Positions 6,793 to 52,300 are shown, counted from the first letter of the stretch. The stretch is DNA of 64,000 nt from Laetmonice hystrix (GCA_965235115.1 OZ249438.1:28892001-28956000), one strand, 5' to 3'. Notes: generated by a model not told the origin, from the sequence alone. Translations and numbers: made by a program.

Positions 6793-7734
6793 TTACCAGT
6801 TCAGAGGTTCACGGAGCCATATAACTGTCGTTCCCTGACTAAAGCTGTGTTAGTGTCGTACGAAGAGGAAGTGGCCGTCCTCTAGACTGTGTCAGCCTCC
6901 ACCGAGTTGGCTGTTCTCATCAATCATCTCAAGCAGTAAGGTTTGGCCGGAGATTGCTGCTATCGATCGACAGACGGCGCTACGGACCCAACCCGTACCA
7001 TTGTCCGCCGCTCCCAAACGACTTGTCAACCCATTGTCAAAATGTCAGAATGAAAGATGATTGACCTAAAAAAAAACTTATGATGATGGCTTCTTCAATA
7101 AATACCCTTAAATTTCCTTTCTTAGAAGGGTTATCTTCACATGTTGAACACTGTAAGCCATCCGGTATCCTTTTCAATCATTTTTATCACTTCCAGTAAT
7201 AACGGATATCTCCTGACGACGAGAGTTTGAGGATAGTATATCTACAGGAAGATAATCTTGTAGGTACAGAAATAAGTTTGGTTCTCCGTAATTTAATAAG
7301 GGAGCAAGAACCAATTCTGACATGTGCTGGGGTGTGCTGGTTTGTTTGCTTTTTAATAACTCTAGCTCGGTAACTGTGAGCTCACGGCGTTCAAGATTGC
7401 GGAATCGGATACCCTAGGACATCAGAGTAATAAGACGGCTGTACTCGTACAAATAACGTGAAGTGAAAACAGATTGACATGATGGTGTTAAAAACACTAA
7501 CAAATTAACCTAAACAGATGACCGTTCCGTACCAAAGACAGAACTGCCAAATATTCAACTCGATAGGCAGAAAAATGTCCAATCAAGAGAAGATGATTGA
7601 GATGAAACCATGCCAACTTTACTCTACGATTCGTTGTGCTCGCCCACCGGTGCAGAATGATAGCGTCAGTTGCTCAGCATTACCGAAAATTGCCCCTCCC
7701 TCCTTACTTCAGTACGCTATATCACCTGCTGAGA

Positions 7735-9828: not shown

Positions 9829-11104
9829 CCGGGTCAGGTTCCAATGTTCACAGATAGAAATTCTACACTTTCCATGCGGGATCTGCGTTCGTTCAGTTCT
9901 TAAAGTGCCACTCGTACCGAGAATAAAGTTACCAAAGGAGACAAACACGTTAAATACTCGCATGGATGTCTCCCAGCATTCAGATCTCTGCTGACAGAGG
10001 AGTCTCATGTGACATTAAAGGAAAATTTACTTGAATATTTAACAATATTACACAAAACGGGACTTCCCGGCGCGCTCGTGCTTTGGCCATAGCGTAACTT
10101 TTAAATCTACATTCTCCTTTTAATTAAATGAAAGCTTTGATCCATTTTTTGTTATTCAAATGTCTCAGGCAAGTACAATCATGTAGTAAGAAAATATACA
10201 TAGAAAAATAAACTTCGAAGAGATGTATGATATTTGATCGTACCAAATTTACCTGTAAACATGTACATTAACGCCATACAAGAGTTAGACCCGAGGGACC
10301 AGAGCCATTCTTGTATTGTTACTTTATAGCAAGAAATCGTTATACCATTTCATACGGTGACTGATGGTTTAGTAAACTAGGGGAGCCGATTGCATATTGG
10401 GCAGTCACATTATGTGTCACGCTATGTGTCACCTGTCACGTTACGTATTACCAATGCGTCACATGCAAGTTAGATGGCGTTCAACAAATTACTTGCGAAG
10501 AATGCTCTGGTATAACCGCTAGATGAGGACGGACTCCTGTACGTGGTACTTTGACACTGTAATCAAGGATGAGATCCACCAAAAATTACGTGAGTGAAGT
10601 CACGTTGAAATATTCTGTCACTCTCAAAACACTGGCTAAGTATCTCTTAGTTATCTGACCAATTAAAATGTACCCCAATCTATAGGAAGTAATTTGCGCT
10701 GCTGCCTTCCATGGAGGAGACTTCATTAGAGGGAGAAGACTTCATTAGATTCTCTGATTGTTAACGGCACAGGCAGTTTAAATGGCTGCGTGTGGTGTCT
10801 CTGCCATTATGCTGCAGTAACTATAGTTATCCTGTTCGTCAGATTAGAGTCACTTTGCATGATAATGTCAGCATTTATTTGCAGGAATATTCCTCGGCTG
10901 ATATGGCTGAGAACTCCTATTGTTCAACTTCCTACGCCTCGTCGTTATCATGAATGGCTGCTAGAAAATAATTAAATGCTGCATTTTGTAGGCATTATGT
11001 AAGTTTTTACCTCATTGTCGCCCTCCGGTGGCAATATTCTCATAACGTCGCTTTTTACATGCGTCTGTCTGAGAGTGCGGCGTTAACAGATGTCAGAAAC
11101 AGTG

Positions 11105-11800
11105 CTCCCCTTCCCTCCCTCCCCTCCCTCCTCCCTCGCCCTCCCTCCCCTCCCCCACCTCCGCCTCCATCTCTTCCCTCCCCTCCCTCCTCCCTCCTCC
11201 CTCGCCCTCCTCTCCCTCCCCTCCCCCACCTCCCTCCCCTCCCTCCTCCCTCGCCCTCCTCTCCCTCCCCTCCCCCGCCTCCCCCTCCCTCCCCCTCCAT
11301 TTCCTCCCTCCCCCCTCCTCTCCCTCCCCTCCCCCACCTCCCCCTCCCTCCATTTCCTCCCCCCCTCCTACCTCGCCCTCCTCTCCCTCCCCCTCCCTCC
11401 CCTCCCTCCCTCGCCCTCCCTCCCTCGCCATCCCTCCCTCGCCATCCCCTCCCTCCCTCGCCATCCCTCCCCTCACCCTACCTCACCCTCCCTCCCCTCG
11501 CCCTCCCCTCCCTCCCCTTCCACTTCCTCACCTACCCCTACCTCCCCCTCCATCTCGTCCCTCCCCTCCCTCCTCCCTCGCCCTTCCCTCCCTCCCCCTC
11601 CCTCCCCTCGCCCTCCTCCCCTCGCCCTCCTTCCCTCGCCCTCCCTCCCCCTCCCCCTCCCTCCCTTCGCCCTCCCTCCCCTCACCCTACCTCACCCTCC
11701 CTCCCCTCGCCCTCCCCTCCCTCCCCTCCACTCCCCTCGCCCTCCCCTCCCTCCCCTCCCTCCCCTCGCCCTCCCCTACCTCCCCCTCCCTCCCTCCTCA
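11105..11800. repeat. Polypyrimidine (CCCT/CCCTCG) low-complexity tract
   Basis: About 700 nt almost entirely C/T on +. Confidence 0.95.
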
Positions 11801-12401
11801 CGCACCAATTTCCTCGGGTATTCTGTATCCGGTAGGAGCTCCCCAAGCCGAGGTGGCGTTGATAGAGTCTACCAGGAACCAACTGTGATGAGAGTCTCAG
11901 CATTCTTTGTTATCTGTTACAAGTAGAGGCAGATGGTATCTCCACATGAACCAGGGTATCTCTTGTGTGGGTCTCCGTGAGGCGAAGTCTTCATTATCTA
12001 TCCTTGGATTGAGGGACACATAGATATAGAGCCTCGCCGAGAGGAGAAACATGTGAGGAAGGACAATAGAGACCCAGGAAGAATGCCCAGTGGAGACAGG
12101 TGGAGAAAGGGAAGGAAAGGGCGAAGGAAACTCCAGGAGAGATAAATGGAAAAATACATTTCCTATTCAAGCTACAGTACTCGACAAGATCATCAACGCC
12201 TCGACCCAATGACAACAGGAAGATTTTTCACAATGTGTGATAATGGTCAAAATATTCCAACTTCGTGAAAAGCTATCAATTTATATATTACCTTTTCTAG
12301 TGATCTGAATATTACATGCAGAGTACATTGTGCCGGTTCTACCATTAAGTGAGATACAATGACATATTCTGACAACCATCAGACTATACAGGAACGTATA
12401 A

Positions 12402-12578
12402 AGGCCTAGACACACATGGGCGTCAAGCGGCAAGCGTCATTTTGAAAATGACGCTCTGAATGCTCAGTATGGTTTTCTATTACACCGTTCACATAACGCT
12501 TCCATACTGAGCATTCAGAGCGTCATTTTCAAAATGATGCTTGACGCTCGACGCTTGCCGCTTGACGTGTCTAGGCCT
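12402..12578. mobile_element. 177-bp fold-back PIF/Harbinger (Tourist-like) MITE
   Basis: AGGCCTAGACAC termini, TAA on both flanks; perfect 35-bp inverted arms 12438-12472 and 12502-12536. Confidence 0.8.
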
Positions 12579-12772
12579 TAAGTGATGTGCCATTATGCAA
12601 AGATCTGGACACATGAACGCTACAACCGCTCACAGTCAAACAATGCCGTTCATCTGGCATTCAGTGACATACAAAGGCATTGTCATGCCAACCGTTCCAG
12701 TGTTAGACACTGTCACTCCAACCGTCCCAGTGTGACACCATCACGTCACCCGTCCCAGTGCTGACACCAGTG

Positions 12773-13188
12773 CTAGGCACTGTCACGTCAACCGTCACGG
12801 TGACAGGCACTGTCACGTCAACCGTCACGGTGACAGGCACTGTTACGCCAACCGTCACGGTGACAGGCACTGTTACACCAACCGTCACGGTGACAGGCAC
12901 GATTACACCAACCGTCACGGTGACAGGCACTGTTACACCAACCGTCACGGTGACAGGCACGGTTACACCAACCGTCACGGTGACAGGCACTGTTACACCA
13001 ACCGTCACGGTGACAGGCACGGTTACACCAACCGTCACGGTGACAGGCACGGTTACACCAACCGTCACGGTGACAGGCACTGTAACACCAACCGTCACGG
13101 TGACAGGCAAGGTTACACCAACCGTCACGGTGACAGGCACGGTTACACCAACCGTCACGGTGACAGGCACTGTTACACCAACCGTAAC
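12773..13188. repeat. 30-bp minisatellite, about 14 copies
   Basis: CAGGCACTGTTACACCAACCGTCACGGTGA; no indels. Confidence 0.95.
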
Positions 13189-13758
13189 GAGGTCATTGAC
13201 GGGATGTTGCCGTATTACAGATTACGAATGAGAATTGAAGCCGTGGAATTCTCGTGCGTGGAATTCTCAGTGCTGCTCACAGACCTCTCCGATAGCAATG
13301 CGTTTTACTTAAGATGACAGAAGCAGTTGATCTCTGACCTGAAGTACTAAAATATTGATCTGTAAGTCGAGGTCCTGCATTCATAATGAATGGCGTTCTG
13401 ACAAGAAAATGGTTGCGCCAGCTGATGTTGACCGAAAGTCGGCATGTCTACACGCGGTCCACAGTAATTCTTGCCCGGTTTCTCATCTATCCGCCGTAAT
13501 AAACACTTTACGGACACGCTTTATCTTTCACGTGATTGTCACCACATTTTACAAGTAGTCCCTTTCACTCCAATAAACACACACTGACTTCGAGTGAGAA
13601 AACGAAATCTTACTGAGTATGGACCGCCAAGAGGTGATACGTCATTCTTGGGACACGACATCCTTCATCAGCTACCGTTTCTTACCACGGATTCAAATCT
13701 ACAATATCATATAGGTTTGCGTGTATCTTTACTTTGCATATTTGTTCTCACAGTATTT

Positions 13759-15141
13759 TAAGCCCAGTGTCTGTCTAACTGGCTTGTGTTCACAATGTCA
13801 TTTCGATGTTAAGCCCAGTGTCTGTCTAACTGGCTTGTGTTCACAATGTCATGTCGATGTTAAGCCCAGTGTCTGTCTAACTGGCTTGTGTTCACAATGT
13901 CATGTCGATGTTAAGCCCAGTGTCTGTCTAACTGGCTTGTTTTCACAATGTTATGTGTACGTTAAGCCCAGTGTCTGTCTAACTGGCTTGTTTTCACAAT
14001 GTTATGTGGACGTTAAGCCCAGTGTCTGTCTAACTGGCTTGTTTTCACAATGTCATGTCGATGTTAAGCCCAGTGTCTGTCTAACTGGCTTGTGTTCACA
14101 ATGTCATGTCGATGTTAAGCCCAGTGTCTGTCTAACTGGCTTGTTTTCACAATGTTATGTGGACGTTAAGCCCAGTGTCTGTCTAACTGGCTTGTTTTCA
14201 CAATGTCATGTCGATGTTAAGCCCAGTGTCTGTCTAACTGGCTTGTTTTCACAATGTTATGTGGACGTTAAGCCCAGTGTCTGTCTAACTGGCTTGTTTT
14301 CACAATGTCATGTCGATGTTAAGCCCAGTGTCTGTCTAACTGGCTTGTTTTCACAATGTCATGTCGATGTTAAGCCCAGTGTCTGTCTAACTGGCTTGTG
14401 TTCACAATGTCATGTCGATGTTAAGCCCAGTGTCTGTCTAACTGGCTTGTTTTCACAATGTTATGTGTACGTTAAGCCCAGTGTCTGTCTAACTGGCTTG
14501 TTTTCACAATGTTATGTCGATGTTAAGCCCAGTGTCTGTCTAACTGGCTTGTTTTCACAATGTTATGTGGACGTTAAGCCCAGTGTCTGTCTAACTGGCT
14601 TGTTTTCACAATGTCATGTCGATGTTAAGCCCAGTGTCTGTCTAACTGGCTTGTTTTCACAATGTCATGTCGATGTTAAGCCCAGTGTCTGTCTAACTGG
14701 CTTGTGTTCACAATGTCATGTCGATGTTAAGCCCAGTGTCTGTCTAACTGGCTTGTTTTCACAATGTTATGTGTACGTTAAGCCCAGTGTCTGTCTAACT
14801 GGCTTGTTTTCACAATGTTATGTCGATGTTAAGCCCAGTGTCTGTCTAACTGGCTTGTTTTCACAATGTTATGTGGACGTTAAGCCCAGTGTCTGTCTAA
14901 CTGGCTTGTTTTCACAATGTTATGTGGACGTTAAGCCCAGTGTCTCTCTAACTGGCTTGTGTTCACAATGTTATGTGTACGTTAAGCCCAGTGTCTGTCT
15001 AACTGGCTTGTTTTCACAATGTTATGTGGACGTTAAGCCCAGTGTCTGTCTAACTGGCTTGTTTTCACAATGTCATGTCGATGTTAAGCCCAGTGTCTGT
15101 CTAACTGGCTTGTTTTCACAATGTCATGTAGATGTTAAGCC
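13759..15141. repeat. 51-bp minisatellite, about 27 copies
   Basis: GTTAAGCCCAGTGTCTGTCTAACTGGCTTGTTTTCACAATGTCATGTCGAT; no indels. Confidence 0.97.
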
Positions 15142-15935
15142 TTTCTTATTCAAAATGCGATCCCTGAGGAAGCATCTTTTTCCGGAAAGGAAAAACTCTG
15201 CATGACAGCATCCTCCTGTCCGGAGACTGTACAGCCTCTCCAAACAAAGAATTAAACAAATTGCTTTAATAAACGCCTGTTTCACAAATCCCGAGAACAA
15301 TAAGACTATGGCAACTCTTTTAATTCAAACGGTAAATATGCCATCCTGCTAAATGCAGAAAGTAAACACAGGAAAAGACTATCCGGCTTAAAATTAATGG
15401 TCGCGGGTTGTTGGAGAAATTCACACCATCCGGTTCTGGACACACCAACACTGGTTACTTTCTCTAGGACCAGTCACAGGAGAATTTGTTAAAATAACAA
15501 CAGGAGGCACATGGTGCATTCCATCGTTAAGTTTTATTCTATCGGTTTCTGTCTTCGCACTTTCAATCATGGCGAGCCATGGATATGTTAGATTTCATAT
15601 GCAGTAACGTGACTAGAGGTTACCCCCATATAGAAGGACACCGTGTTTTCTAAACCAGGCTAATCCTGAACGGCGCCAGGCGTAATTTATCACCGTCATC
15701 TTTCAGAGCTCCGACCTGAAATCTCGACGTGGCCCTCATGAAATTACTTCGACTGTTTGACTGCAATTAGTTAAAAACTGATTGCTACATGATGCCGTTC
15801 ACCAAAGTGGAGATGAATGGACTCTATTCCAGTTCTCAAATATATGTAGGCCGACGTCTTCCTTACTTTGTGGGCACATTGAGCACATGAGTTTCTGTTG
15901 CATTAGATGAACTCTGTCACGTACGTAAGTAAGCT

Positions 15936-17293
15936 ATACACTGCAGCCACAGCTCTATATTCGCATTATTATCATACAGTGCAGCCACAGCTCTATATTC
16001 TCATCATACACTGCAGCCACAGCTCTATATTCGCATTATTATCATACACTGCAGCCACAGCTCTATATTCGCATTATTATCATACAGTGCAGCCACAGCT
16101 CTATATTCTCATCATACAGTGCAGCCACAGCTCTATATTCTCATTATTATCATACACTGCAGCCACAACTCTATATTCTCATTATTATCATACACTGCAG
16201 CCACAGCTCTATATTCTCATTATTATCATACACTGCAGCCACATCTCTATATTCTCATTATTATCATACACTGCAGCCACAGCTCTATATTCTCATTATT
16301 ATCATACACTGCAGCCACAACTCTATATTCGCATTATTATCATACACTGCAGCCACAGCTCTATATTCTCATTATTATCATACACTGCAGCCACAGCTCT
16401 ATATTCTCATTATTATCATACACTGCAGCCACAGCTCTATATTCTCATTATTATCATACACTGCAGCCACAGCTCTATATTCTCATTATTATCATACACT
16501 GCAGCCACACTCAGCTCTATATTCTCATTATTATCATACACTGCAGCCACAACTCTATATTCGCATTATTATCATACAGTGCAGCCACAGCTCTATATTC
16601 TCATTATTATCATACACTGCAGCCACAACTCTATATTCGCATTATTATCATACACTGCAGCCACAGCTCTATATTCTCATTATTATCATACACTGCAGCC
16701 ACAGCTCTATATTCTCATTATTATCATACACTGCAGCCACAGCTCTATATTCTCATTATTATCATACACTGCAGCCACAGCTCTATATTCTCATTATTAT
16801 CATACACTGCAGCCACAGCTCTATATTCTCATTATTATCATACACTGCAGCCACAGCTCTATATTTTCATTATTATCATTCACTGCAGCCACAGCTCTAT
16901 ATTCTCATTATTATCATACACTGCAGCCACAGCTCTATATTCTCATTATTATCATACACTGCAGCCACATCTCTATATTCTCATTATTATCATACACTGC
17001 AGCCACAGCTCTATATTCTCATTATTATCATACACTGCAGCCACATCTCTATATTCTCATTATTATCATACACTGCAGCCACATCTCTATATTCTCATTA
17101 TTATCATACACTGCAGCCACAGCTCTATATTCTCATTATTATCATACACTGCAGCCACATCTCTATATTCTCATTATTATCATACACTGCAGCCACATCT
17201 CTATATTCTCATTATTATCATACACTGCAGCCACATCTCTATATTCTCATTATTATCATACACTGCAGCCACAGCTCTATATTATCAGTATTA
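15936..17293. repeat. 38-bp minisatellite, about 35 copies
   Basis: ATACACTGCAGCCACAGCTCTATATTCTCATTATTATC. Confidence 0.97.
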
Positions 17294-17299
17294 TCATCC

Positions 17300-17430
17300 C
17301 AAGCCTTAGTGATGCCTAATCCCACAATAATATCCTGTGATAACTGATAGAACGCCTCGGTTATATCCTCCATATCTCTGTTAGTGTAGCCCTGACATTT
17401 ACAACATTGCCCACGTATTCGCCACATTAA
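17300..17430 (-). mobile_element. Possible decayed LINE AP-endonuclease fragment
   Basis: CQGYTNRDMEDI...DIIVGLGITKAW resembles the N.GL.NK...DII.I.ETW motif. Confidence 0.2.
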
Positions 17431-23329: not shown

Positions 23330-24498
23330 CTGTAAGAACAAAAGAAACTGGCCACTTGCATCTACTCTGATCTTGGTGCATGTAAATTGATCTCAATGTG
23401 AGGTCTTGGTCTCCGCGGAGAGAGCGACGAGTTGTTGTCTCGATCTGTCCTCAGGCGAGTCAACATTCTGTATTCATGAAAGATCGGGCATAAAGGCAAC
23501 CGCTGCACTCACTCAAAATGGGTTCTAATTTCAGATCTCCTCAGTCAAAAACAACGTATGGGCAAATATATATGTTTCCTTTCTAGGGTTATATCCCGCC
23601 CGTAAAATAATATGTGTGGTTCAGATGTCTCGAGAATCTCATGAGGATATCATAAATAATATCCACCATGCACATTTCACACATTTTTTACCGACAACAC
23701 TACCAACATTCTGATCACAAACTGCTTTAAATCCAAAGAAGTTCCATTTGATTACGGACAGGGTAAACCACAGTGGGATTGGTTTGTTCACAGTTTATTC
23801 TGGTTGGAATAAATAGAGTTAGCAATTTTATTTATCAGCAAGACAGATATTAAGAAAGAAGTTCAGAGCGGCTTCCATGCTATGCATATATATCGCGAAG
23901 CGGATCTAAATAGAATTTCTTATAAAAAACAGCACTGTAGTATAAAAAAATCTAACGGCATTTGTTGCATTTGAGCAGATCTATATATATATCACAGCTT
24001 CGACGGGCATGTCTGATAAGTTATGGTTCACAAGAGTAATTGTGAAATGTGGTCACACAGGACACGAGGCAGTTCGCCGGGCCAGCGTTGACCTGGCGTT
24101 TCCAGAAACCGAAATGAAAACCTCATGTTTTAAGACGCTTTTTTTTGGGGGGGGGGGGTTGCGGGGGAGTTGCGGTTAAAAATTTCCGAACAAGAAATTA
24201 AAGGTCTGTTTTAGACAAATGTTGTTCCAATAGTACGTCGTGTATAATATACTGAACGGAACTGAAAACGCATAGGTCCAAATGTATATTTTCATCACAA
24301 GTAGGATGTGCAAATTGTTTTGGTTGAGAACAGAAATACCACTGAGTTACTGATACTGACCTGGCTTCTTATCAAATATCGAATCTGAGTGTTCCTTTCA
24401 AATCAATATTTGAGCTATATTTTTAGCCTATGCTTTTTCATTGCCGTTCAGTATATAAAACCATTCTACTTTATTACCAGTCAAAAATTTGGACCTAC

Positions 24499-26479
24499 CG
24501 CTCTGGTAGGTGATGACAATCTTTGGGTTCTCTCGACTTGGGTAGTGGCCTGACTTCCGGCGCTCCTTCACAACGACAGTAGATCCATTTCTCTCTCGGG
24601 TCTGGCTGTGAAGCCTTGCCGTGGCCTTGCTATCATTAAGGGCTCCAGAACTGATATGATCATTTGGAGATTTGGGATCCGTTTTGGCGCGGCCATCACG
24701 GGGTAGTGTTTGCTTGGGTGCGGCGACGGCCGCGATATTAGCAGTATCCTGATGGCTTTCATTGTGTTGCGTCTCTGAGCTGATGTAGATATGAGTGTGG
24801 TCGGTGCCTTTCCATTGCCTGCTTAGATTACTGCTGCTGCTCGTGCTATCAATGAGAGTGAAACTCAAAGAGTGCGAGGTAACTTTGCTACGTGGCAGAT
24901 CAGGAGGGGCAGAAGAAACCTTTGACAGCAAACTGTCCTTAGTTGGCATTTGCCCCGTTACTTTCACTGGGTTGCTGTTACTCGCCTGCACGTTGCTCCC
25001 ATTAACGCTGGATTTCTTACTCTTGTTCAGTTCTTTCAAAGGCGTTTCTCTTTCCGACTCCGACGACACATCAGAGGCGACATTCATCAAGTCACTTGCA
25101 TTCATGGTCTGTTCAAAAGGATTTGATAAAGTTTCTGAAGAATTGAGGACCGTCCAATCTACTGCGTCCTGTGAAGTTGTAGCGTTCCAATCAGGGTGGA
25201 TATTGGCCGGCCTGTCCATGTCGGGTGTGGATTTACTCATTTCATCAGTCTCCCCTTCACTGTCCTCCTCTTCAATGTTGGTCGGGCTTTCCTCTGTAGC
25301 TGTCTCCTGCTGGCCCTCCTCGTACGCCTCAGTGTTGTAGTAGCCGTGGGAGGAGGTGTTGAGAGTCGTGCCGTTTGTCCTGAAACGGGCAGGTATGTAC
25401 TTGTAATGAAGCCCTGCCTGACTCCTGCAGTCTTCCTCCTCCATATCCTTGACCACCGTACCGTTCAACATGATACACACCTTGCCGATGGTGACCCGGC
25501 GGGCCGTCTCCGGGTCAAGGTCGTCAAACAGTGACGTTCTGTTGTAGTACGTCGTGTCGTTCTGAATGTTCCATCTGAGCACCCTCGGTGGCGCCCCTTC
25601 CTTTCCTACTGTGGCGTTACCCCAGAACCTGTCGTCCTCTACAGGGCCCTCAGTGTCCTCCTCAACAGGTCCGCTCTCATCCCTGTCTGAACCCAGTGGA
25701 AACTCAGATAAGGACGATCCGCCTGTGGTGGAATTCCTGTCAGATGTTACATTTGTATTCACTGCTAGATTCTCTACGCCATCCGTTGGTACACCATGGC
25801 TGTCACTTACCAATTCGTCTGTCACTATTTCTTCCTGGGTGGGCTCTTTGCCGGTCGTGCCCACGTTGGCTGTCAATGTTTTATCTTTCGTTTTTTCACT
25901 GTCCGTTGTAACATGAATGGGATTTAAAGATTCCTCCCTTGTTAATTTACCATTAGTCGTGCCGTGTTTTGATTGCGATTCTTCAAAAGCTAAGTTTGGG
26001 ACGAGTACCTCCTCAAAGGTTGTGGAATTTTCTTCCAGGCGGGAGAAATCAAAAGGTTTGGCTTTGATCTGTGTCTCAGGTGTGGCAGGCTCAATAGATA
26101 GCACTTCTGGTTGTGTTTCCTCTGTCTGAACGCTGAGCTCAAGTGATGTGTCAGTTTTATCTTCATGCTCGTTCGGCTGGAGAATCGCGCCAGTGCCCGG
26201 CTGTGACGGGAACGACCTACGACTGTCCATGCGCTGAGATACAGCAGAGAAGATTGCACTTGTAATTTCTTGTTGACCTTTCGATCGGCCTCTAGTTGAG
26301 GCGGGAAGGCTGCTGGGAGACGTCGGGGCTGCCTTGATGGAGACACACACGGAAATCAAGGTTACGAGACACAAAACCCAGCTGCCCTTCCGCCAACACT
26401 CATAAACTGGCACTGGTCGACCTCCCGGACTCTCCATGTCTAACACTGGCCGCACTGGCTGGAACTGACGTACAACCAT
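24499..26479 (-). CDS. Large coding exon of an unrecognised secreted or surface, acidic Ser/Thr-rich glycoprotein
   Basis: 2-kb non-repetitive ORF; hydrophobic SWVLCLVTLISVCVSIKA|AP near the N-terminus; over a dozen N-x-S/T sequons. Strong acceptor (ttgttatatttttcag) at 26701-26702 and donor AGCG|gtaggt at 24498. ATG at 26479 or 26437. Confidence 0.78.
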
Positions 26480-37299: not shown

Positions 37300-37891
37300 T
37301 TTCGAGCGCTTCTGTCCCGATATGTCCCTGTATGGGCCCTCATCCTGCATGTGTAAACGAAAACCGGCAACATCCTCTTCCGGTCGGTGCGCGGTAACGA
37401 CGTCGTGAACGGGCAGACGATCCTTGCAGTACGAACGCTGTGTCTCCCAGACCGAGAACTGATCCTCTCTATAGCGTTCCTTTCCCTAACCTCGGTCGCT
37501 GTCAGACAGGCATACATACACGGTGTGACCTACGTCATACCCAGTCAGATCGCTACGAGAAACCAGCCATGTGCCGACACCCCTGATGTTTGATCTGTCT
37601 GACGAAGATTTCTGGAAACACTTCTCATTGATCGTTGAATCACAGGAGAACGGACGCTGTGTCATGTGCCACAGTTAATTGTCACGGACGTCCAGTTCGG
37701 GGTGGTATTAGGGCAACAATTATCTGAGCAGAGGGTGGGCCACCGCGCTCTGCCACTCACTAGGGCACGACATACATAGTCGGTGTACAGTTCGGCCCAC
37801 TGCCATCGTGACGGAAACCACGACCGAACGGCTTTGCACAACGCCACTTAACGGACGGGGCGCCATTGGGCCCAAACAGTTCTTTTAGTTG
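37300..37891 (+). promoter_or_regulatory. CpG-rich candidate 5'-UTR exon of the SWAP70-like gene
   Basis: CpG-rich block ending in donor TTG|gtgagt (37892); the CDS exon at 41341 needs an upstream exon. Confidence 0.3.
37330..37890 (+). pseudogene. Decayed coding-like remnant, possibly a longin-domain (HPS1/Mon1/Fuzzy-type) retrocopy
   Basis: Across frameshifts: ALILHV*TKTGNILFRS, HFSLIVESQENG, VQFGP, RKPRPNGFAQRHL, in the order of HPS1 N-terminal motifs; by-eye alignment only. Confidence 0.25.
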
Positions 37892-38494
37892 GTGAGTATT
37901 AATCTTATAGGGCACAGTCTCAAGAATAACTACTTCACTTTGTATAAGTTAATTCACCTCTATAGGCCTATGTCTGCATGTCTGCCGAAGTTCTGCAAAC
38001 TGCTGTTAAAGCAAACTAGTTAGCAGTTACTTCCGCAATTATAGAACTGATATATGGCTGTTTCCCTCTGCAACGATCAGGGAAAGCAAAGACAGGGAAG
38101 GCAACCGCTATATTGTAAACATAATATAATGTATCCCGTACGTGGCACCTATAGACACAGGGTTTACCTACCGAGAATACGTGTATTTTCTAGGTTTAAG
38201 ACTGGGGATATGGTCAATGATTTTAGTGTGTCTCCCCAGAGGCTGACCGATATAACAGATGAACAAGGTCATATGGGTACAGTTTCTAGAATCACTCTCA
38301 GTATTATAGGTCGTTGCCAGCATAGTTGGAATTAGAACAGGCCTAGATTTCTCTTTTGTAGGCATGATAGGTTTGATGCTTGTCAATTGTCAAACAGACT
38401 ATATAATTGCTTTGGTCCCTCACTTGGCAGACGGCTGAAAGTTATTCCAAGTTACTACTACTAAACGCTGGCTGCAGGGAGGAAATTTGTGAAA

Positions 38495-39077
38495 TTCAGA
38501 ATTAGATATGCAAAGAACATGTGACACTCATTTGAGTGTATATAGAGAGGAAAGTAACATGTAGCACTCACATATGAGTATAGAGAGAAAAGGAACATGT
38601 GGCACTTACTTGAGTGTATCTCACATTGAGTATCTAGATAGGGGAGGAACATGTGAAACTCACATTGAGTGTATGTTGAGAGGGAAAGAACATGTGAAAC
38701 TCACATTGAGTGACTATCTAGAGAGGCAAGGAACATGACATTGTGGCACTCACATTGAGTGTATCTAGAGAGGGAAAGAACATGTGAAACTCACATTGAG
38801 TGGCTATCTAGAGAGGCAAGGAACATGACATTGTGGCACTCACATTGAGTGTATCTAGCGAGGGAAGGAACATGTGACACTCACATTGAGTATCTAGAGA
38901 GGCAAGGAACATGTGGCACTCACATTGAGTGTATCTAGAGAGGCAAGGAACATGTGGCACTCATATTGAGTGTATCTAGTGAGGGAAGGAACATGTGGCA
39001 CTCACATTGAGTGAGTATCTAGACAGGCAAGGAACATGTGGCACTCACATTGAGTGTATCTAGAGAGGCAAGGAACA
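38495..39077. repeat. About 40-bp minisatellite
   Basis: GAACATGTGGCACTCACATTGAGTGTATCTAGAGAGGCAAG. Confidence 0.92.
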
Positions 39078-40591
39078 CCTATGGCCATAATAATAGTAAT
39101 TCTTTATGGGTTACCTTCCTATTTAGACACACTTGAAATAATCCTTGTATTGAATAACATAGAAAAGGAATACCATGAGAATCGAGAGTGCGACACTCTA
39201 TTCTATACATTTATGTGTGTGTGTGTGAATTTGTTGACGCCATGATTTCGGATGAAGGGAGGGGGCGGCGCCTAATGTAGAGTTGGCATTTCCCATGTTA
39301 GAGCTGGGACAGTTATGATATCACCACCGACAACTTCCTCCTCTCACTGGCAGAGTGCGAGCAGACCTGCTCACCACACCCGGCCAAGGCGACCCAGGTT
39401 TAACACTCCTTAAGATACTTTTCTTGTTTCTCCGATGGGAGTAGTCAGGACCAGTGATCGATCACCGGTTGGGTGTGGCAAGGATTACTCCCAGTTCTTA
39501 GAACGTGAGAAGTGGAAACCTTACACCTTTTCAAATGTAGATCATGCGACACGATATATTCCTACATTGCGGTGAAGATCAAGTTATCAGATGATATATG
39601 GACAGTGAAGCTGTTCGTCATTGGTTTACATTTTACAATCGTTCTCGGAATGGAAGATGGCTCCTCGACTTGCCATGGACCCGTTCCTGTCGGCTGGGCA
39701 GGAGTTTCCTTACAAACAATAGTGGGCGGTGTGTACATTTCACGCCATGATCCATCGCCTCCTCGCAAGGCCCAGTTCCGTCTCAAATGGTGTCAGTAGG
39801 CCACGCTATAAGGGGACAAGTTCCGCATGTATTTAACTAAACAGAGACTAGACGGACACAAAAATGAGTCCGACGCTTAACGCGGCATGTTCATCACGCA
39901 GTGAAGTTCCTGATACTTGATACTCCGTGATAGATACCCAGTATGAGAAAGAAATATCCTAGTACCCAGTGGCGTATATCTCTTATATTATCGGCCTGTT
40001 GTCACATTGAACTTTCCAATACCATCCTCAGTGGATTGAGAAAGTCAGAAAAACAACTGCAGTGGACTTTTGGTCCTCAACTTTCAGATACACCGTGTAC
40101 CGACGAACCATCCTTTTTAAAGTCCAGGTTGACTACGAAGATGCATCGTTTTTCATCGATTTTTGTGTGTTGTTGAATATATCTTGCCGTGAAGGCTTGA
40201 CTATGGTGAAACTTACCAATTGCAATGCTGGGGGTTTCCTGCTGTATCTAGGAGAGCTGCAACACCTGTTTCATAATAATTCTCTAAGTAGGCCTATATC
40301 CACTAGGTGGTTCATGATGTGGGCAGGTCTATACATAGTCTCTTTAAGTTTTCCAATATGTAATGTCCTGTTTTTGTTAAAATTAAAAAACATGATGTAA
40401 CCATAAGGAGTAAATAATATATCGACAAAATAAGGATAGAAAGTGATTAAAACAATAAGAGCTGGATCAAGGTTGTAAAGTGAAACATATCTTTGATTTA
40501 AAAAGTCGCTTTATAGGCTACCACTGTTATAATTAAATAAGAGACTAACAGTTACTTAATCTCACTCTTACTACTGTCCTTCCTATGTAGG

Positions 40592-41021
40592 TTTTGTCAT
40601 AAATCAATGACGAAGGTAGGAGTGAGCAATGTTATTATGTTTACATAGTGATATTAGACAGAAGGGACGTCTCCAGTCCCGACATGCTCAGTCCTAGGTT
40701 CTGTCGTACATCAGTGACGAAGGTAGGAGGGAGCAATGTTATTATGTTTATATAGTGATATTAGACAGAAGGGACGTCTCCAGTCCCGACATGCTCAGTC
40801 CTAGGTTCTGTCGTACATCAGTGACGAAGGTAGGAGGGAGCAATGTTATTATGTTTATATAGTGATATTAGACAGAAGGGACGTCTCCAGTCCCGACATG
40901 CTCAGTCCTAGGTTCTGTCATAAACCAGTGACGAAGGTAGGAGGGAGCAATGTTATTATGTTTATATAGTGATATTAGACAGAAGGGACGTCTCCAGTCC
41001 CGACATGCTCAGTCCTAGGTT
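40592..41021. repeat. 107-bp tandem repeat x4
   Basis: TGACGAAGG at 40608, 40715, 40822, 40929. Confidence 0.95.
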
Positions 41022-41357
41022 TGTATATGTTTATCGGTTAACAGGCATTTACAGGCGGATTAAGGGTCAGGGACAGCTGGGATGTGGGTCCCAGTCTGCC
41101 CCGACGGATTACTAACATAGGAATGCCAAGTTAACATATACAATAGGCCTATATACAAGGAAATTAACATGAAAGCTATAGCTTTTACAAGGATGATGGA
41201 CGGAAAGACATAAAAACCACCAGCAGTGTAAATTCCAACGACCATTTCGAATCCTCCGTGTTGTCAGTGTAGATGCAAGATTATTTAGGCTGCCAGAATT
41301 ATTGTTTCATTTCAAATAATATTCTTACGTCTATTTGTAGATCGGGACAGCGGCAAG

Positions 41358-43835
41358 ATGTCGGGCCAAGGGTTGATGTGCGTGTGGCAGGCAGTGGCTG
41401 TTCAAGACCCTGCCCACTCAGCCGTGAAAGGTGTGGCACGTAAAAACATCGTCCAGAATATCACATCGGGTCTGGCTAACTCTAACGGTGTCCACTATAC
41501 GGCGCGCTCGTTCGACGACAACTTTCCGAACGTGCATGTCGACTTCAGCGACTTCTGTAACTACGTCAAGGTTTGTCTTCGTGACCACAGCGTCCCGCTC
41601 TTCAGTGTCGAGGACCTGATCGATGCACACAGCTGGGATTGCTGCCGAGACGCGTACCGCCTTCACAACTGCTCGGTCGACGAGGATGAAGCTTTTAAAT
41701 TATGGCAGATTTTTAACCGTCTATGTGTGCGGGGTTCTATGCCCCCTGTCATGGAAGGCGAAGATGTGCAGTGGCTTGGCCAGAAACTTGCAAAACATCT
41801 GCGAAAGGAGTTTGAAACGGATATGCACAGACAATACATCTTTGTGGAGATGCTTTCTGAAATTGACAATGCTTGTTTTAAATCTGTGAGCCCAGCTGAA
41901 GTCGAACAAGCCATAAGAGGTATACACTCCTGGCTGGTCCATGAAATATGTATGACTGGCTGGATGAGTAAACGCACCAGAAAGCAAGGAAACTGGACCA
42001 ACTGGCATAGGCGATGGTTTATCTTACGACCCGGCCAGTTAACATATTACACAACCCAAACGCTGACAGAGAGAAAGGGTGACATTTCAATCAGTGATAT
42101 TTCAATAGTTGACAATCTGCCCGATTACAAGTCTCTTGTTCGTAGGTACCCAGCACGGTTTAGGATAACAAACGCACCCCATGTTGAAATCGAGCTCTCT
42201 TCTGATGACGACAGAACCAAGCGAGTTTGGATGGTGGCTGTACGCGAGGCGATCGAGGCCTCCAAGGCAGGCGTATCGCCCGTGCAAGCCATGCTGGCTG
42301 ATCGCCACAAACAGAGAAAGTTTGGTCAGAAGTTGATATCCCTGGATGAGGCTCGGACACGCATCTCGGCGCTACCCACGGCTCACGTCATCACGCCAGG
42401 TCTGCGGCTGGGCAGTGACGCCGAGGAGGAGGACGAAGATGACATTGACGGCCAGCCGAGATTAGAACAAACGCGAGCCGAGACAATGGAAGCAGTGGCA
42501 GCCGAAACCGGGGCTGTCGATCAGGACGGCATGGATACATTGAGGGTCACCCCTGACGACCACAACAAATATGAGACCCAGCGCGAAAGTTTCCGTCGAG
42601 CATTCTCGGAAATCGACCAAACAAACAAGGGATCGATTGATGAGCAAGAATTCAACATATTCCTGCAGAAGTTAGGGACGAACATGTCCGAACAAGAGGC
42701 CGAAGAAATATTCCATGCGATTGACAAAAGCGACTCCGGCGAAATAACGTTGGACAACTTCAATCGTTTTCTAATAAACTCTATATTTGGAGAGGAAACG
42801 ACCGACGCCACCAGCAGTCCCCAGCTGAGGGCCGCGTTACTGAAAGCTGACCAGGACGGCTCGGGCACTCTGGCCTTCCGAGAATTTGTCGAATATATTT
42901 GGGAGAAACGCTGGCTCTTCTGTGGAGACAGACTCCTGACAGCCATTGAAAAACTCGAGGAGAGCAATCGAGGGCATCAATTCCAAGAGTTTAAAAGCTT
43001 TGTTGACCAGCAGCATTTACAAAAAACTTACACAGAAACCGATGAAAATGACCATTACGACATGTCTGTGGAGGGCATGTTGTGCGAGAGGTATTCCTCG
43101 GAACTCGACCGTCTCGCAGCCTACCTCTGGCGCAGATGGAGCGCATTCGTCATCTATAAACAACTAAAAGACGCCAAGGATTTCAATCGTGTTTGCAAGA
43201 AAAACAATGTTCTCATTGCTAAACTCAACTTTGTTGATCTTGTATGTTTCTCAGACCTACCATATATTACACCCAAATACACCCTAGTTCGGGACTTCGC
43301 ATGGATGAAGAGCTCAGAAGAGGACAGCGAGGGAAAAGCTCTGTTTCCTCCAAACTTTGATGGCGTACTGCCGGTAGAGTTTGCCACTGCCGAGTACCTG
43401 CGCTACTACGGAGCGTCTGTGGCGGACAAGACCCAGAAACAGGTGTCACTGCTGTATCGTCACTCCATACAAGACTTCACATACCAGAACTTGCACATCG
43501 AGGAGTACGTGGCCACCAAGAGTGGCGGTTCTGGTCTGAGGCGACGGGAGTTTGCCCAGCTCGTCTCCCCGCTCGAGGACCACTCCGGCTTCCTGGTCCT
43601 CGGCAAGATAGACGAGGACGGCGAACTTCACCTGACTGCCTTCAAGGTACCAGCACGGTACACGCTGTGTATCCCTGGGGGCACCATTCACTCCCATGAT
43701 TACCTGCATGGCATGTGGCAGACAACACTGTCTCCCGAGTCAAACATCGACCACGTGAATATCATGAGGAGACTGGGGCAGGACAATGATGAAAACTGTA
43801 AAAAGTTTATTTTCGCGTTTGAACAGTACATATAA
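41358..43835 (+). CDS. SWAP70/DEF6-like PH-domain protein fused to EF-hands and a ureidoglycolate-lyase-like cupin (825 aa, single coding exon)
   Basis: EDEAFKLWQIFNRL and EQAIRGIHSWLVHEICMTGWMSKR...NWHRRWFILRPGQLTYY align with SWAP70 (EEDAFKIWVIFNFL; NWTERWFVLKPNIISYY). PH domain about aa 196-302. EF loops DQTNKGSIDEQE (aa 420), DKSDSGEITLDN (456), DQDGSGTLAFRE (498). C-terminal LHLTAFKVP...IPGGTIH is cupin-like. Acceptor ctatttgtag ends at 41340, 17 nt before the ATG. Confidence 0.9.
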   Translation: MSGQGLMCVWQAVAVQDPAHSAVKGVARKNIVQNITSGLANSNGVHYTARSFDDNFPNVHVDFSDFCNYVKVCLRDHSVPLFSVEDLIDAHSWDCCRDAYRLHNCSVDEDEAFKLWQIFNRLCVRGSMPPVMEGEDVQWLGQKLAKHLRKEFETDMHRQYIFVEMLSEIDNACFKSVSPAEVEQAIRGIHSWLVHEICMTGWMSKRTRKQGNWTNWHRRWFILRPGQLTYYTTQTLTERKGDISISDISIVDNLPDYKSLVRRYPARFRITNAPHVEIELSSDDDRTKRVWMVAVREAIEASKAGVSPVQAMLADRHKQRKFGQKLISLDEARTRISALPTAHVITPGLRLGSDAEEEDEDDIDGQPRLEQTRAETMEAVAAETGAVDQDGMDTLRVTPDDHNKYETQRESFRRAFSEIDQTNKGSIDEQEFNIFLQKLGTNMSEQEAEEIFHAIDKSDSGEITLDNFNRFLINSIFGEETTDATSSPQLRAALLKADQDGSGTLAFREFVEYIWEKRWLFCGDRLLTAIEKLEESNRGHQFQEFKSFVDQQHLQKTYTETDENDHYDMSVEGMLCERYSSELDRLAAYLWRRWSAFVIYKQLKDAKDFNRVCKKNNVLIAKLNFVDLVCFSDLPYITPKYTLVRDFAWMKSSEEDSEGKALFPPNFDGVLPVEFATAEYLRYYGASVADKTQKQVSLLYRHSIQDFTYQNLHIEEYVATKSGGSGLRRREFAQLVSPLEDHSGFLVLGKIDEDGELHLTAFKVPARYTLCIPGGTIHSHDYLHGMWQTTLSPESNIDHVNIMRRLGQDNDENCKKFIFAFEQYI

Positions 43836-44345
43836 GCATTGGTTGGCAGCATAGTTTGCGCACGATAAGTGAAGCACCAGTACTTATCAGCCTTGAGATT
43901 AGCATACACTTTGTATGCGAGTCTAACATTCTGCAGGAATTTGTTATCTTGCTGTCATTGTTATCAAATTGACCATTTCGCTTCTACGGCAGTTGAACTA
44001 TGCTGAAATGACGAACAAAGTTGAATTATGTTGTAACATTATAATTCGATTCGAACTATAGGAAAAAACTTCAGTAAAACGTTGCAGAAGGATATTAAAG
44101 TACTGACTGTGGTAACATTGGGAACAGAACAAGAGTGGTTTGTTAAAGTCACACGCCTGGACAACCCTTCATCACATCGGCTTCTGCTTGTAAAGACCAC
44201 AGTGGAAGCACCAAGATTTCATACCGCTCCTGCCAGGATATTAACGTTAGATCCTACATGGATTAGTGTTATGGACCACATGACACTGTATATGGTTTGT
44301 TTGAGGTAAGAGTGTGGGAAATGTCAACATTAGTCGTGTTCCGTG

Positions 44346-44446
44346 AACACATTGATTGGGAGACCACCTACCGCCCAGTACACATTGATTGGGAGACCAC
44401 CTACCGCCCAGTACACATTGATTGGGAGACCACCTACCGCCCAGTA
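44346..44446. repeat. 33-bp tandem repeat x3
   Basis: GTACACATTGATTGGGAGACCACCTACCGCCCA. Confidence 0.9.
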
Positions 44447-44694
44447 TGTACAGTGATCATACTAGATATACGTTACTATACATGTGATTCGAGTATCTAT
44501 CTATTTTCTCGCCTGCGCAAGGAACTTCGACGCTCATTGAACTACACAGTTATAGGATACATGTACACGTACTAGATATCTATAAGAAGGTCGGTATTAC
44601 AAAACACGGTTTAACATTTGCAAGTCAGCGTATTCGCAATTTACAGCTGCTTGATGCACAAATGCCTCACTTGAACATAAAATGTACAGATATA

Positions 44695-44700
44695 AAATAA
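44695..44700 (+). terminator. Candidate polyadenylation signal (AATAAA) of the SWAP70-like gene
   Basis: aataaa about 860 nt after the stop codon. Confidence 0.3.
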
Positions 44701-46363
44701 AAGGAGAGCTATACTTGTTTCCCTTTGATGATGATAAGGTTAAAGGGTGATTATCCCCTGAATAACTATAAGTGAGACGATATAGTCACGTGACCTATTT
44801 ATAGTACCAGTAAAAAGTTGGGGGCAGTTGTAGACCCCGACCTACACGAATAAAGGACCTACAATGTTGCAACCGCGTGCTCCACTGGTATACAGTGTAG
44901 GGAGTAGCGGTTCCGGTTACGTAATTGAAACCGAAAGAAAGTGAAATTGATTGCATAAATATGACGTCATAATCAAGTAGTAAATATGCCTGCGTCATCC
45001 TGGGAAACCCAAGGCTATGTGTTCTACCAACACTCGTGTCAGTACCTGGTATGCTGTATATTTCAGTCTATTTTTAATTTGTACACAACTTATAATAAAG
45101 GGGTTTGCGAATAAATCTTTGTACATGCAGTTGTCCACATATGAATATATCGATGCATATTTTTACATGCATGTACATTTCAATGTTCTCCATTCGAAGT
45201 GATAGTCTAAAGTTCAACAGAAAATATTAAGAACGATTTAAAGGTATATCAGCCCCATTCACCCTACACTCCCCTGGACCGTAATGGCCGAATAGTAGAC
45301 TTAATCTTAAAAAAGGCGCTGCAAGTGAAACAGAAATGCCAGCAATAAAGCGAGCAGCACATTTTTGGAACAACGATTTAACTGCTGTGAAGCAGTTTTT
45401 ATTTGTTAATGCCGCCTAACAATGAAGATTCAATTGTAGGCCGAACCCATCCCATCACGCCTTTCAAGCATTTCTCATGCTGCGAAATGTCATGATTACT
45501 ATTTAGCGTAAGAAAATATGTCTTTTTCTGTGACAAAACTAACAAATTTTACCCCACCTGCCACATTTGACCCTTTGTACGCGCGTTTTCTATAATTCCA
45601 CGTCTACGTCTAGGTTCTACGGACGGCTACTACTCAAAATACGTTGCACCTGTCTCAAGATGCGTAGTTATTTATAAATATAGAACGTTATAAGACGACG
45701 TTATAACAACATTTACATCAATCAAGTACAGAAAGCGTTTTTATATTGCACAATTATCAATTGATATTAGGTTTTATCCCAATATACTATTTACATAGCA
45801 ACTGTACCTGGAATTACTTGGTACTAATAGGCCTACTAGTCATCGCACTATTTTGACTGTCCTTTCTGAAAATGTAATGCTCGCGTGGACTGCATGATAT
45901 AGGTCCAGTTACCTATATAATTTGCCAAATTCTATGTGGAATCTAACGACACATATTAGCCTAGTATATTTAAAGTATAGTATATTTGTAGCACCTCTCT
46001 AGACCTATCACGCAACATATTGTTGTTGTACTTTATTATTTACCTTATATTGATATTTCTCTCATCGTTGGGATGAAATTGATAACTTTGATACCTTCAG
46101 GATGTGGTACCACAATGTGGTACCACAACACACATTGTCTCTGATGCAGTCTAACCCGGGGCATTCCCCAACCAGTTCACAGAGTGACTCATGACAATTA
46201 CTCGTTCCCGAATGTACGAAAAACATCCAGGATTATCCGACACCGGGAAAGAGTAAAATGTCATGAGTCACATTGTTCACAGCTTGACTATAGCATCATA
46301 AACTTCATGTCTATGCTAGCATCAAGTCCGTATGGAACTATGTCCGTGTACATCAAAACAGTG

Positions 46364-49331: not shown

Positions 49332-52300
49332 CTGTCGATAGAAACAGTATACTGTGATCCCAACACTAGCATCAAGGGTGATTACACGGGAGGTGATTAC
49401 ACGGGAGGTGATTACACACGGGAGGTGATTACACGGGAGGTGATTACACGAGAGGTGATTACACACGGGAGGTGATTACACGGGAGGTGATTACACGGGA
49501 GGAGATTACACACGGGAGGAGATTACACACGGGAGGTGATTACACGGGAGGTGATTACACACGGGAGGTGATTACACGGGAGGTGATTACACGAGAGGTG
49601 ATTACACACGGGAGGTGATTACACGGGAGGTGATTACACGAGAGGTGATTACACACGGGAGGTGATTACACGGGAGGTGATTACACGAGAGGTGATTACA
49701 CACGGGAGGTGATTACACGGGAGGTGATTACACGGGAGGAGATTACACGGGAGGTGATTACACGAGAGGTCAGTACAGGGAGGTGATTACACGGGAGGTG
49801 ATTACACGGGAGGTGATTACACGGGAGGTGATTACACACGGGAGGTGATTACACGAGAGGTCAGTACAGGGAGGTCAGTACACGGGAGGTGATTACACGG
49901 GAGGTGATTACACGAGAGGTGATTACACACGGGAGGTGATTACACGAGAGGTCAGTACAGGGAGGTCAGTACACGGGAGGTGATTACACGGGAGGTGATT
50001 ACACGAGAGGTCAGTACAGGGAGGTGATTACACGGGAGGTGATTACACGGGAGGTGATTACACACGGGAGGTGATTACACGAGAGGTCAGTACAGGGAGG
50101 TCAGTACACGGGAGGTGATTACACGGGAGGTGATTACACGGGAGGTGATTACACACGGGAGGTGATTACACGAGAGGTCAGTACAGGGAGGTCAGTACAC
50201 GGGAGGTGATTACACGGGAGGTGATTACACGAGAGGTCAGTACAGGGAGGTGATTACACGGGAGGTGATTACACGGGAGGTGATTACACACGGGAGGTGA
50301 TTACACGGGAGGTGATTACACGGGAGGTGATTACACGGGGGGTGATTACACGGGAGGTGATTACACGGGAGGTGATTACACACGGGAGGTGATTACACGG
50401 AAGGTGATTACACACGGGAGGTGATTACACGGGAGGTGATTACACGGGAGGTCAGTACCTCGGTTACAAGGAGGGAAACATGACTCTGGGAGGGTGTGTC
50501 CAGCAAGCCTCGGTTACAGGGAGGGAACACGGAACCATGGCTCTGGGAGGGTGTGTCCAGCAGGCCTCGGTTACAGGGAGAGAACACGGAAACATGGCTC
50601 TGGGAGGGTGTGTTCAGCAGGCCTCGGTTACAGGGAGGGAACACGGAAACATGGCTCTGGGAGGGTGTGTCCGGCAGGCCTCGGTTACAGGGAGAGAACA
50701 CGGAAACATGGCTCTGGGAGGGTGTGTTCAGCAGGCCTCGGTTACAGGGAGGGAACACGGAAACATGGCTCTGGGAGAGTGTGTCCAGCAGGGCTCGGTT
50801 ACAGGGAGGGAACACGGAAACATGGCTCTGGGAGGGTGTGTCCAGCAGGCCTCGGTTACAGGGAGGGAACACGGAAACATGGTTCTGGGAGAGTGTGTCC
50901 AGCAGGTCTCGGTTACAGGGAGGGAACACGGAACCATGGCTCTGGGAGGGTGTGTCCAGCAGGCCTCGGTTACAGGGAGAGAACACGGAAACATGGCTGT
51001 GGGAGGGTGTGTCCAGCAGGCCTCGGTTACAGGGAGGGAACACGGAACCATGGCTCTGGGAGGGTGTGTCCAGCAGGCCTCGGTTACAGGGAGAGAACAC
51101 GGAAACATGGCTCTGGGAGGGTGTGTCCAGCAGGCCTCGGTTACAGGGAGGGAACACGGAAACATGGCTCTAGGAGGGTGTGTTCAGCAGGCCTCGGTTA
51201 CAGGGAGGGAACACGGAAACATGGCTCTGGGAGGGTGTGTCCGGCAGCCCTCGGTTACAGGGAGGGAACACGGAAACATGGCTCTGGGAGGGTGTGTCCA
51301 TGCATGCAGCAGGTCTCGGTTACAGGGAGGGAACACGGAAACATGGCTCTGGGAGGGTGTGTTCAGCGGACTCGTGTTTTGGAGACCAGTCGAGTCCTAA
51401 AAATTACTCTCAGATATAGTTTTTGTCTTAAACCATCAGCCGCCCCCAGGGAGGACGGGGGAGGGTGGGGAGGCGAGCCGATGGAGAGGGTGTGGCTGGA
51501 ATCCTCGTTAAAGTTATGATCCCGACCGTGTAACAGTCCCGGGTATAGTGAGCGGACTGCGGTGGCGGCGGCGCCCTCTGTAGTCGATGTTTGCAGACAC
51601 AACACGCGTTATCAGAGCGCCACGTGGCGCGGTCGTATCCCACAATAAATACCGATAGCAGAGACAGAGTCAGCAGGCGGGATCACCCACAGTCTCCGCT
51701 AGTATCCTACAATACCGATAGCAGAGACAGAGTCAGCAGGCCGGATCACCCATATATAGTCTCCGCTAGTATCCCACCATACCGATAGCAGAGACAGAGT
51801 CAGCCGGCGGGATCATCCACAGTCTCCGCTATCCCACAATACCGATAGCAGAGACAGAGTCAGCCGGCGGGATCACCCACAGTCTCCGCTATAGTATCCC
51901 ACAATACCGATAGCAGAGACAGAGTCAGCAGGCGGGATCACCCACAGTCTCCGCTAGTATCCCACAATAACCGATAGCAGAGACAGAGTCAGCAGGCGGG
52001 ATCACCCACAGTCTCCGCTAGTATCCCACAATAACCGATAGCAGAGACAGAGTCAGCAGGCGGGATCACCCTCAGTCTCCGCTAGTATCCCACAATACTG
52101 ATAGCAGAGACAGAGTCAGCAGGCGGGACCACCCACAGTCTCCGCTAGTATCCCACAATACCGATAGCAGAGACAGAGTCAGCAGGCCGGATCACCCACA
52201 GTCTCCGCTATAGTATCCTACAATACTGATAGCAGAGACAGAGTCAGCCGGCGGGATCACCCACAGTCTCCGCTAGTATCCCACAATACCGATAGTAGAG

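Follow-up and report, generated by a model that had tools for sequence, protein, structure and literature searches.

A predicted protein of Laetmonice hystrix joining a SWAP70-type cassette, EF-hands and a cupin with a degenerate putative metal site

What might a single protein do with a membrane-binding cassette of the SWAP70 type, a set of calcium-binding loops and a cupin barrel? The question is raised by one gene in a 64,000-nucleotide stretch of the genome of Laetmonice hystrix (GCA_965235115.1 OZ249438.1:28892001-28956000), which was analysed as a whole and is called the window below; positions count from its first letter, and all features of the gene lie on the + strand. The coding sequence (CDS) occupies 41358-43835 (+) as one intact open reading frame (ORF) of 825 amino acids (aa) and a stop codon, with full-length homologues that are 38-68% identical, in a repeat-rich, gene-poor part of the 627-Mb genome (G000 contig C3). 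From the N-terminus onwards, the protein consists of a SWAP70-type N-terminal domain and a PH domain (together aa 1-305), an acidic linker, EF-hands, a conserved helix and a cupin. Each of these modules is of a known kind; the combination is new. We put a probability of roughly 60% on the reading that the product is an adaptor which responds to lipid and Ca2+ and whose cupin is a pseudo-enzyme, descended from a family of enzymes that probably depend on a metal.

The SWAP70-type cassette and the EF-hands

The first step towards an answer concerns the N-terminal domain (aa 1-196; 41358-41945), which alone gave no Pfam match in the window protein and no lead in a language-model atlas search (0.76). 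Its kinship becomes visible through the family: PF25530 (EF-hand_SWAP70_N) matches 3 of the 18 members of a family alignment (best 3.3e-7), the member P0011 scores 26.5 bits against this model at a cut-off of 27, and the family profile aligns over 169 columns with an exon of the SWAP70 gene of this genome (hhalign probability 97.4%, E 1.4e-11), to which the window protein itself is 25% identical (BLASTP E 8e-8). Word-indexed homologue searches retrieved neither SWAP70 nor DEF6, and we draw the SWAP70 link because of PF25530 and the genome's own exon, not because of those searches.

Directly behind this domain, as in SWAP70 and DEF6, stands the PH domain (aa 199-305; 41952-42272) with a basic beta1-beta2 loop, KRTRK. 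Pfam recognises it over aa 199-299 (PF00169, E 1.2e-14, 55 bits), and the best solved match to the family profile is the PH domain of SWAP70 (2dn6, E 3.5e-14), followed by the next PH domain at 7e-6. Human SWAP70 binds phosphatidylinositol 3,4-bisphosphate, and mutation of its residues R223 and R224 abolishes phosphoinositide binding (PMC5149533). Such binding by the window PH domain is plausible, judging from its sequence. By our own counting along the 2dn6 alignment, with the residue numbering unchecked, the two human arginines presumably fall on K209 and Q210 of the window protein, that is, on a lysine and a glutamine within a family-invariant basic loop (KRTRKQ).

Beyond the PH domain the likeness to SWAP70/DEF6 ends. 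Whereas those proteins continue into a C-terminal coiled coil and actin-binding region, no coiled coil was seen after the PH domain of the window protein, where we find instead a helix with a conserved TPVQ..L segment, a variable linker that is gap-rich in the alignment (aa 306-405; 42273-42572; acidic at about aa 352-366), the EF-hands and the cupin. Could the protein nevertheless be the SWAP70/DEF6 orthologue of this species with a lineage-specific tail, as its N-terminal and PH domains might suggest? Searching the genome with the 18-member family profile uncovered the canonical SWAP70 on another chromosome (contig C18, 20,270,186-20,280,769; L014, L015). This gene has several exons, among them one of 197 aa that matches PF25530 above the cut-off and more strongly (36.8 bits) and is followed by a PH exon and coiled-coil exons; the window protein shares with the 197-aa exon only the low identity given above. 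Because of this gene the orthologue reading was rejected, and we grant it practically no chance. The window gene is, on these comparisons, an ancient relative of SWAP70 and not its orthologue, and the SWAP70 N-terminal/PH cassette appears here to be reused outside actin regulation.

The EF-hand domain (aa 406-545; 42573-42992) is detected by Pfam over aa 410-515 (EF-hand_7, 3.3e-14, 53 bits; EF-hand_1 in three stretches, 42 bits), and its best matches in the PDB are calmodulins (E ~1e-11). Four EF-loop-like motifs are present, at aa 420-431, 456-467, 498-509 and 534-545; the third (DQDGSGTLAFRE) is the sole fully canonical loop and the fourth is degenerate. With calmodulin the region shares the paired EF-hands and the canonical third loop, but it sits inside a multidomain protein and its loops 1, 2 and 4 follow the canonical pattern in part only. 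We infer that at least one EF-hand of the window protein would bind Ca2+. Between this domain and the cupin lies a conserved, basic amphipathic helix (aa 571-605; 43068-43172), which appears as helix H8-42 in the AlphaFold2 model described below and whose motif RW..F..F is kept in an alignment of 66 family sequences.

Much of this arrangement had been anticipated in a preliminary description made from the sequence alone. The boundaries and length of the ORF were reproduced exactly, and the proposed SWAP70/DEF6-type module, the missing coiled coil (whose exons belong to the separate gene on C18) and the acidic linker are all borne out. The three EF-hand loops named there agree with what Pfam sees, but undercount the four loop-like motifs, only one of which is fully canonical.

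The cupin domain and its putative metal site

The C-terminal domain (aa 618-825; 43209-43832), with an AllA-like core at about aa 669-824, has no Pfam, NCBIfam or meaningful PDB sequence match, either for the window protein or for the profiles. An AlphaFold2 model built from the 66-sequence alignment reached a mean predicted local distance difference test (pLDDT) score of 86, with the core above 90; a 4-sequence alignment had given only 35. Among PDB structures, Foldseek places the ureidoglycolate lyases 2bdr, 1xsq and 1yqc at the top (E ~5e-4, probability 1.00), with DUF4867 and other cupins behind them, while VIA-align against 48,161 chains places AllA 1yqc first (Z 9.9, 133/160 residues), DUF4867 9gyy second (Z 8.4) and generic cupins at Z<=7.6. 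Of the 50 highest-ranking structural matches, almost every one is a cupin or a related protein of double-stranded beta-helix fold, and among these neighbours are RmlC-type and ketoisomerase cupins, which are of the metal-independent type. Searches of AFDB and the ESM-atlas agree on the fold and also show bacterial and viral relatives. On the model, the domain is confirmed as a cupin whose nearest solved relative is AllA, at the fold level only.

The hidden Markov model (HMM) of the AllA family, PF04115, finds no match at E up to 10 in the window protein or in any of the 66 members, and a profile-profile comparison with the genome's own PF04115 proteins is not significant (hhalign probability ~1%). 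Because the sequence profiles do not connect to PF04115, we treat the domain as belonging to a separate cupin family, and since the profile-profile comparison is not significant, no residue-level alignment with AllA is claimed. AllA (PF04115; 1yqc, 1xsq, 2bdr) shares the cupin barrel and is the best structural match by two independent aligners, whereas the present family has an additional N-terminal beta segment of ~50 aa and motifs of its own. AllA is Ni2+-dependent and releases urea from ureidoglycolate (PMC3793230); the window copy, in contrast, is without such metal ligands. As for DUF4867 (PF16161), no Pfam match was obtained, only the fold match (Z 8.4) and a language-model lead. The preliminary description had spoken of an AllA-like cupin of about 170 aa and had left room for the absence of a cupin fold; the motifs it quoted and the fold stand, by AlphaFold2, Foldseek and VIA-align, but the domain measures ~205 aa (618-822) and lacks any HMM or profile match to that family.

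Does this barrel still hold a metal? In the 66-sequence alignment a tetrad E-x-H-x3-H...H is near-invariant (in model numbering E165 in 60/66, H167 in 62/66, H171 in 61/66 and H215 in 63/66), and the complete E/H/H/H consensus is found in 57/66 members. These positions lie on model strands 163-167, 171-175 and 214-216, as in cupin motifs 1 and 2, and H215 sits in a PxGxxH.N motif resembling the latter. The spacing i, i+2, i+6 recurs in the crystal structure of DUF4867, where the metal ligands are E97, H99, E103 and H150 (PMC11968277). DUF4867 proteins (SqvB/SftX, 9gyy/9gyz) differ, however, in being bacterial, single-domain and encoded in sulfosugar/ketose gene clusters, in having Glu as third ligand where the present family has His, and in showing no sequence-level match to it. 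The parent-family cupin is probably a metal-dependent enzyme, to judge from this tetrad.

The window cupin, by comparison, reads R728, R730, Q734 and H778, so that three of the four putative ligands are gone. By the alignment columns, the segment that corresponds to the family's E-x-H-x3-H (43539-43559) has become R-R-R-E-F-A-Q, which leaves three new basic residues at the former metal site, and only H778 in cupin motif 2 (PxGxxH; 43689-43691) is retained. The loss is not the property of one sequence. The closest relative, P0001, reads D/H/H/Y; in a maximum-likelihood tree it forms with the window protein a clade (99/100) on a long stem, nested among annelid-type sequences with intact sites, and the two are 65% identical in the cupin and 85% in the N-terminal part. 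In this genome, two paralogues still have E/H/H/H (GIEHHDFAHLDCPL). We infer that the window lineage lost an ancestral metal site, and the presence of intact-site and dead-site paralogues in one genome offers a natural experiment.

Because its lineage lost three of four ligands, the window cupin is most likely non-catalytic. A competing reading would keep it as a working small-molecule-binding or catalytic domain with a metal-independent or remodelled site, for example one where the Arg-rich segment RRRE takes up an anionic ligand, and would make the protein a Ca2+/lipid-gated enzyme or sensor. The retention of the fold core and of the family residues HLTAF.VP, PGGxIH and GxW.T speaks for it, as do the three new basic residues, the metal-independent RmlC-type and ketoisomerase cupins among the structural neighbours, and purifying selection on the cupin, in which 4 of 4 coding variants are synonymous. 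Yet the related sequences with altered sites differ from one another (D/H/H/Y in P0001, H/Q/A/F in P0004, R/Q/T/Y in P0069), which looks like drift after a lost constraint, and the stem branch is long. We regard this reading as unlikely, though it deserves to be taken seriously. The "small-molecule-binding cupin" proposed at the outset is likewise doubtful for the window copy with its three missing ligands; it fits the sister paralogues better.

P0004 (816 aa) and P0069 (515 aa) themselves form a second lineage with a degenerate site, on a very long branch; the precomputed Pfam list of P0004 holds a PH domain only, and its EF-hands may have decayed too.

Among the structural relatives found in AFDB are A0A0W0TUM8, A0A078KYF0, A0A447T2B0, G8PSK4 and A0A6C0H086 (TM 0.53-0.58, 16-22% identity), one relative being a protein of 797 aa with the cupin-like domain at its C-terminus, and the ESM-atlas clusters are labelled Pseudomonadota or giant-virus (Nucleocytoviricota). 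We take them as leads on the wider origin of the cupin. Additionally, five tandem single-exon ORFs in the worm genome match PF04115 above the cut-off (G000 C12:17.062-17.067 Mb, L025-L027; C7:10.558-10.563 Mb, L028 and L029), for example as 212-aa proteins with NYHPDSGQVFFP...IWHQ; they represent an AllA-type animal gene family separate from the cupin studied here.

Family spread, transcript and selection

Is the architecture an accident of one genome? An exhaustive profile search with the cupin domain returned 439 representative proteins at E<=1e-3, of which 77 reach E<=1e-30, that is, a cupin family of at least 439 representative clusters for which neither Pfam nor NCBIfam has a model. The full architecture is found in Lingula anatina (XP_013385903.1), Pinctada imbricata (KAK3086147.1), Tegillarca granosa, Ostrea edulis (XP_048751565.2) and annelids, as well as on several large eukaryotic contigs. 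Among the examined proteins whose cupin is nearly complete, all modules are present in 23, and 17 have EF-hands and cupin, the latter layout occurring in Lingula and others; there are also C2 + EF-hand + cupin proteins, standalone cupins in a rotifer and, in Symbiodinium, a gene model in which the cupin is fused with other domains. The full-architecture copies are labelled "uncharacterized" or were automatically named "Calmodulin", and the latter name, borne by bivalve orthologues, is a misleading mis-annotation.

Single proteins carrying both the SWAP70-like and the cupin half, a point the preliminary description had raised, thus exist in Lingula, Pinctada, Tegillarca, Ostrea and annelids. 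As regards the unusual combination that it had reported, the architecture was described correctly, and our literature search found no paper on a combined SWAP70-like/PH + EF-hand + cupin architecture or on the cupin family; the combination is not singular, however. The full architecture is, as its homologues indicate, that of a conserved lophotrochozoan family, of which this genome contains three paralogues. We rejected a one-off fusion and an assembly chimera in view of this conservation and of the single contig that spans the gene.

The two other intact paralogues, likewise single-exon, lie ~4.8 Mb away, together with truncated copies. Their cluster (G000 C3:33,695,770-33,728,006; L004-L009) holds two intact copies of 800-817 aa with intact E/H/H/H, a copy cut down to the N-terminal and PH part (L008, an ORF of 319 aa) and a small piece of the cupin (L009).

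Whether the window copy is itself in use can be judged from four sequencing runs of one sample in which the stretch occurs. In three of them both the gene and its flanks are evenly covered, in the manner of DNA. The fourth, X3, comprises 58 Mb of contigs in total and has zero depth in the flanks at 40485-41075 and 45016-45400; its contig spans 41330-44352 and carries 444 further bases on the 5' side, the last 30 of which match 37851-37880 exactly and uniquely. Past 37880 the genome continues for 11 nt to a GTGAGT donor from 37892, and a pyrimidine-rich tract with AG at 41339-41340 precedes the coding exon. The 10 mismatches of the X3 contig equal 7 listed single-nucleotide polymorphisms plus the 3 to be expected if 11 bases of exon 1 had been wrongly aligned with the end of the intron. 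These observations point to a spliced messenger RNA with a 5' untranslated region (UTR) exon, whose 3' end lies at 37851-37891 and which possibly reaches back to ~37437, a 3.4-kb GT...AG intron in the 5' UTR (37892-41340) and one main exon (41341-44352). In the main exon, 17 nt of 5' UTR precede the complete CDS, and 3' UTR follows over 517 nt or more.

Of the variants in the CDS, 7/8 are synonymous, the four in the cupin included. About one in four would be expected to be synonymous (p ~4e-4; expectation and p are our own estimate), and therefore purifying selection still acts on the window gene. The gene is most probably expressed, and it is selectively maintained. A retro-pseudogene was rejected on account of the intact ORF, the spliced 5' UTR and this selection. 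One might also think of a decaying or neutral duplicate, in which the architecture no longer has a present role and for which an intact, transcribed ORF would be no sign of function: the cupin has changed faster than the N-terminus, as the 65% and 85% identities to P0001 show, the ligands are lost, and the truncated copies in the cluster at C3:33.7 Mb testify to turnover. Against this stand the intact 2.5-kb ORF, the equally intact 828-aa orthologue (P0001) from another sample, the spliced, transcript-like contig over the gene and the ratio of 7 synonymous to 1 non-synonymous coding variants. We hold such decay to be very improbable.

Two repeats adjoin these features. A tandem repeat of 107 nt (x4.1) at 40588-41021 lies inside the 5' UTR intron proposed above, and a perfect repeat of 33 nt (x3) at 44347-44446 follows just past the mapped 3' UTR, where all contigs break. 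The depth of X3 rises abruptly to 500-800 over 44228-45015, and this hints at a repeat or at a further transcript of high abundance.

The proposed role of the protein

How, then, might the parts work together? Most likely, the SWAP70-type N-terminal domain and the PH domain would bring the protein to phosphoinositide-bearing membranes, and the EF-hand domain, with at least one canonical loop, would sense Ca2+, the conserved basic amphipathic helix (aa 571-605) linking the EF-hands to the cupin. In the intact members of the family, Ca2+ and membrane binding may gate the activity or the placement of a metal-dependent cupin, perhaps through this helix, although this is a weaker suggestion. In the window copy, as a member of a fast-evolving paralogue lineage that lost three of four ligands, the cupin would be a non-catalytic module, retained for a surface that serves binding or regulation. 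This is the adaptor with a pseudo-enzyme cupin to which we gave our preference above.

Obviously, several points weigh against this preferred reading. The functional roles proposed for the family draw on homology and models. Loops 1 and 2 of the EF-hand region are non-canonical, with Lys at position 5 and Asn at position 12, and one of the two lipid-binding arginines of SWAP70 is presumably replaced by Gln, subject to the unchecked counting mentioned above. None of the runs, X3 included, is labelled as RNA, so that the transcript nature of the X3 contig is deduced. Sequence profiles give no link between the cupin family and PF04115, and the equivalence of the tetrad to the ligands of DUF4867 and AllA rests on spacing and strand position. 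Furthermore, many cupins, such as sugar epimerases, are metal-free, and the loss of metal ligands is no proof that ligand binding has been lost.

Nevertheless, the family as a whole deserves attention, as its cupin has repeatedly been joined to EF-hands as Ca2+ sensors and to PH and C2 domains as membrane binders. This repeated joining suggests that invertebrates and protists possess an enzymatic activity under Ca2+/lipid control that has so far gone unrecognised. Going further, one could speculate that the family represents a new class of spiralian metallo-cupin enzymes, recruited to membranes and gated by Ca2+, whose cousins in protists are the EF-cupin and C2-EF-cupin proteins. Such enzymes would act on a small metabolite or a lipid head-group at phosphoinositide-marked membranes, and the window gene, as a paralogue without catalytic activity, would regulate them or serve as their scaffold. 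As a complete scenario this appears quite doubtful to us; if true, it would place a pseudo-enzyme/enzyme pair within one signalling module.

Elsewhere in the window, long ORFs at 7700-17300 and 50400-51500, for which Pfam gives no matches or only zero-stretch low-complexity ones, look like products of repeats and not like genes. On the opposite strand, 24428-26479 (-) holds an ORF of 683 aa without a Pfam match, with a hydrophobic N-terminal segment, a Ser/Thr/Asn-rich composition and many N-x-S/T sites, which may be an exon of a secreted glycoprotein or a chance ORF.

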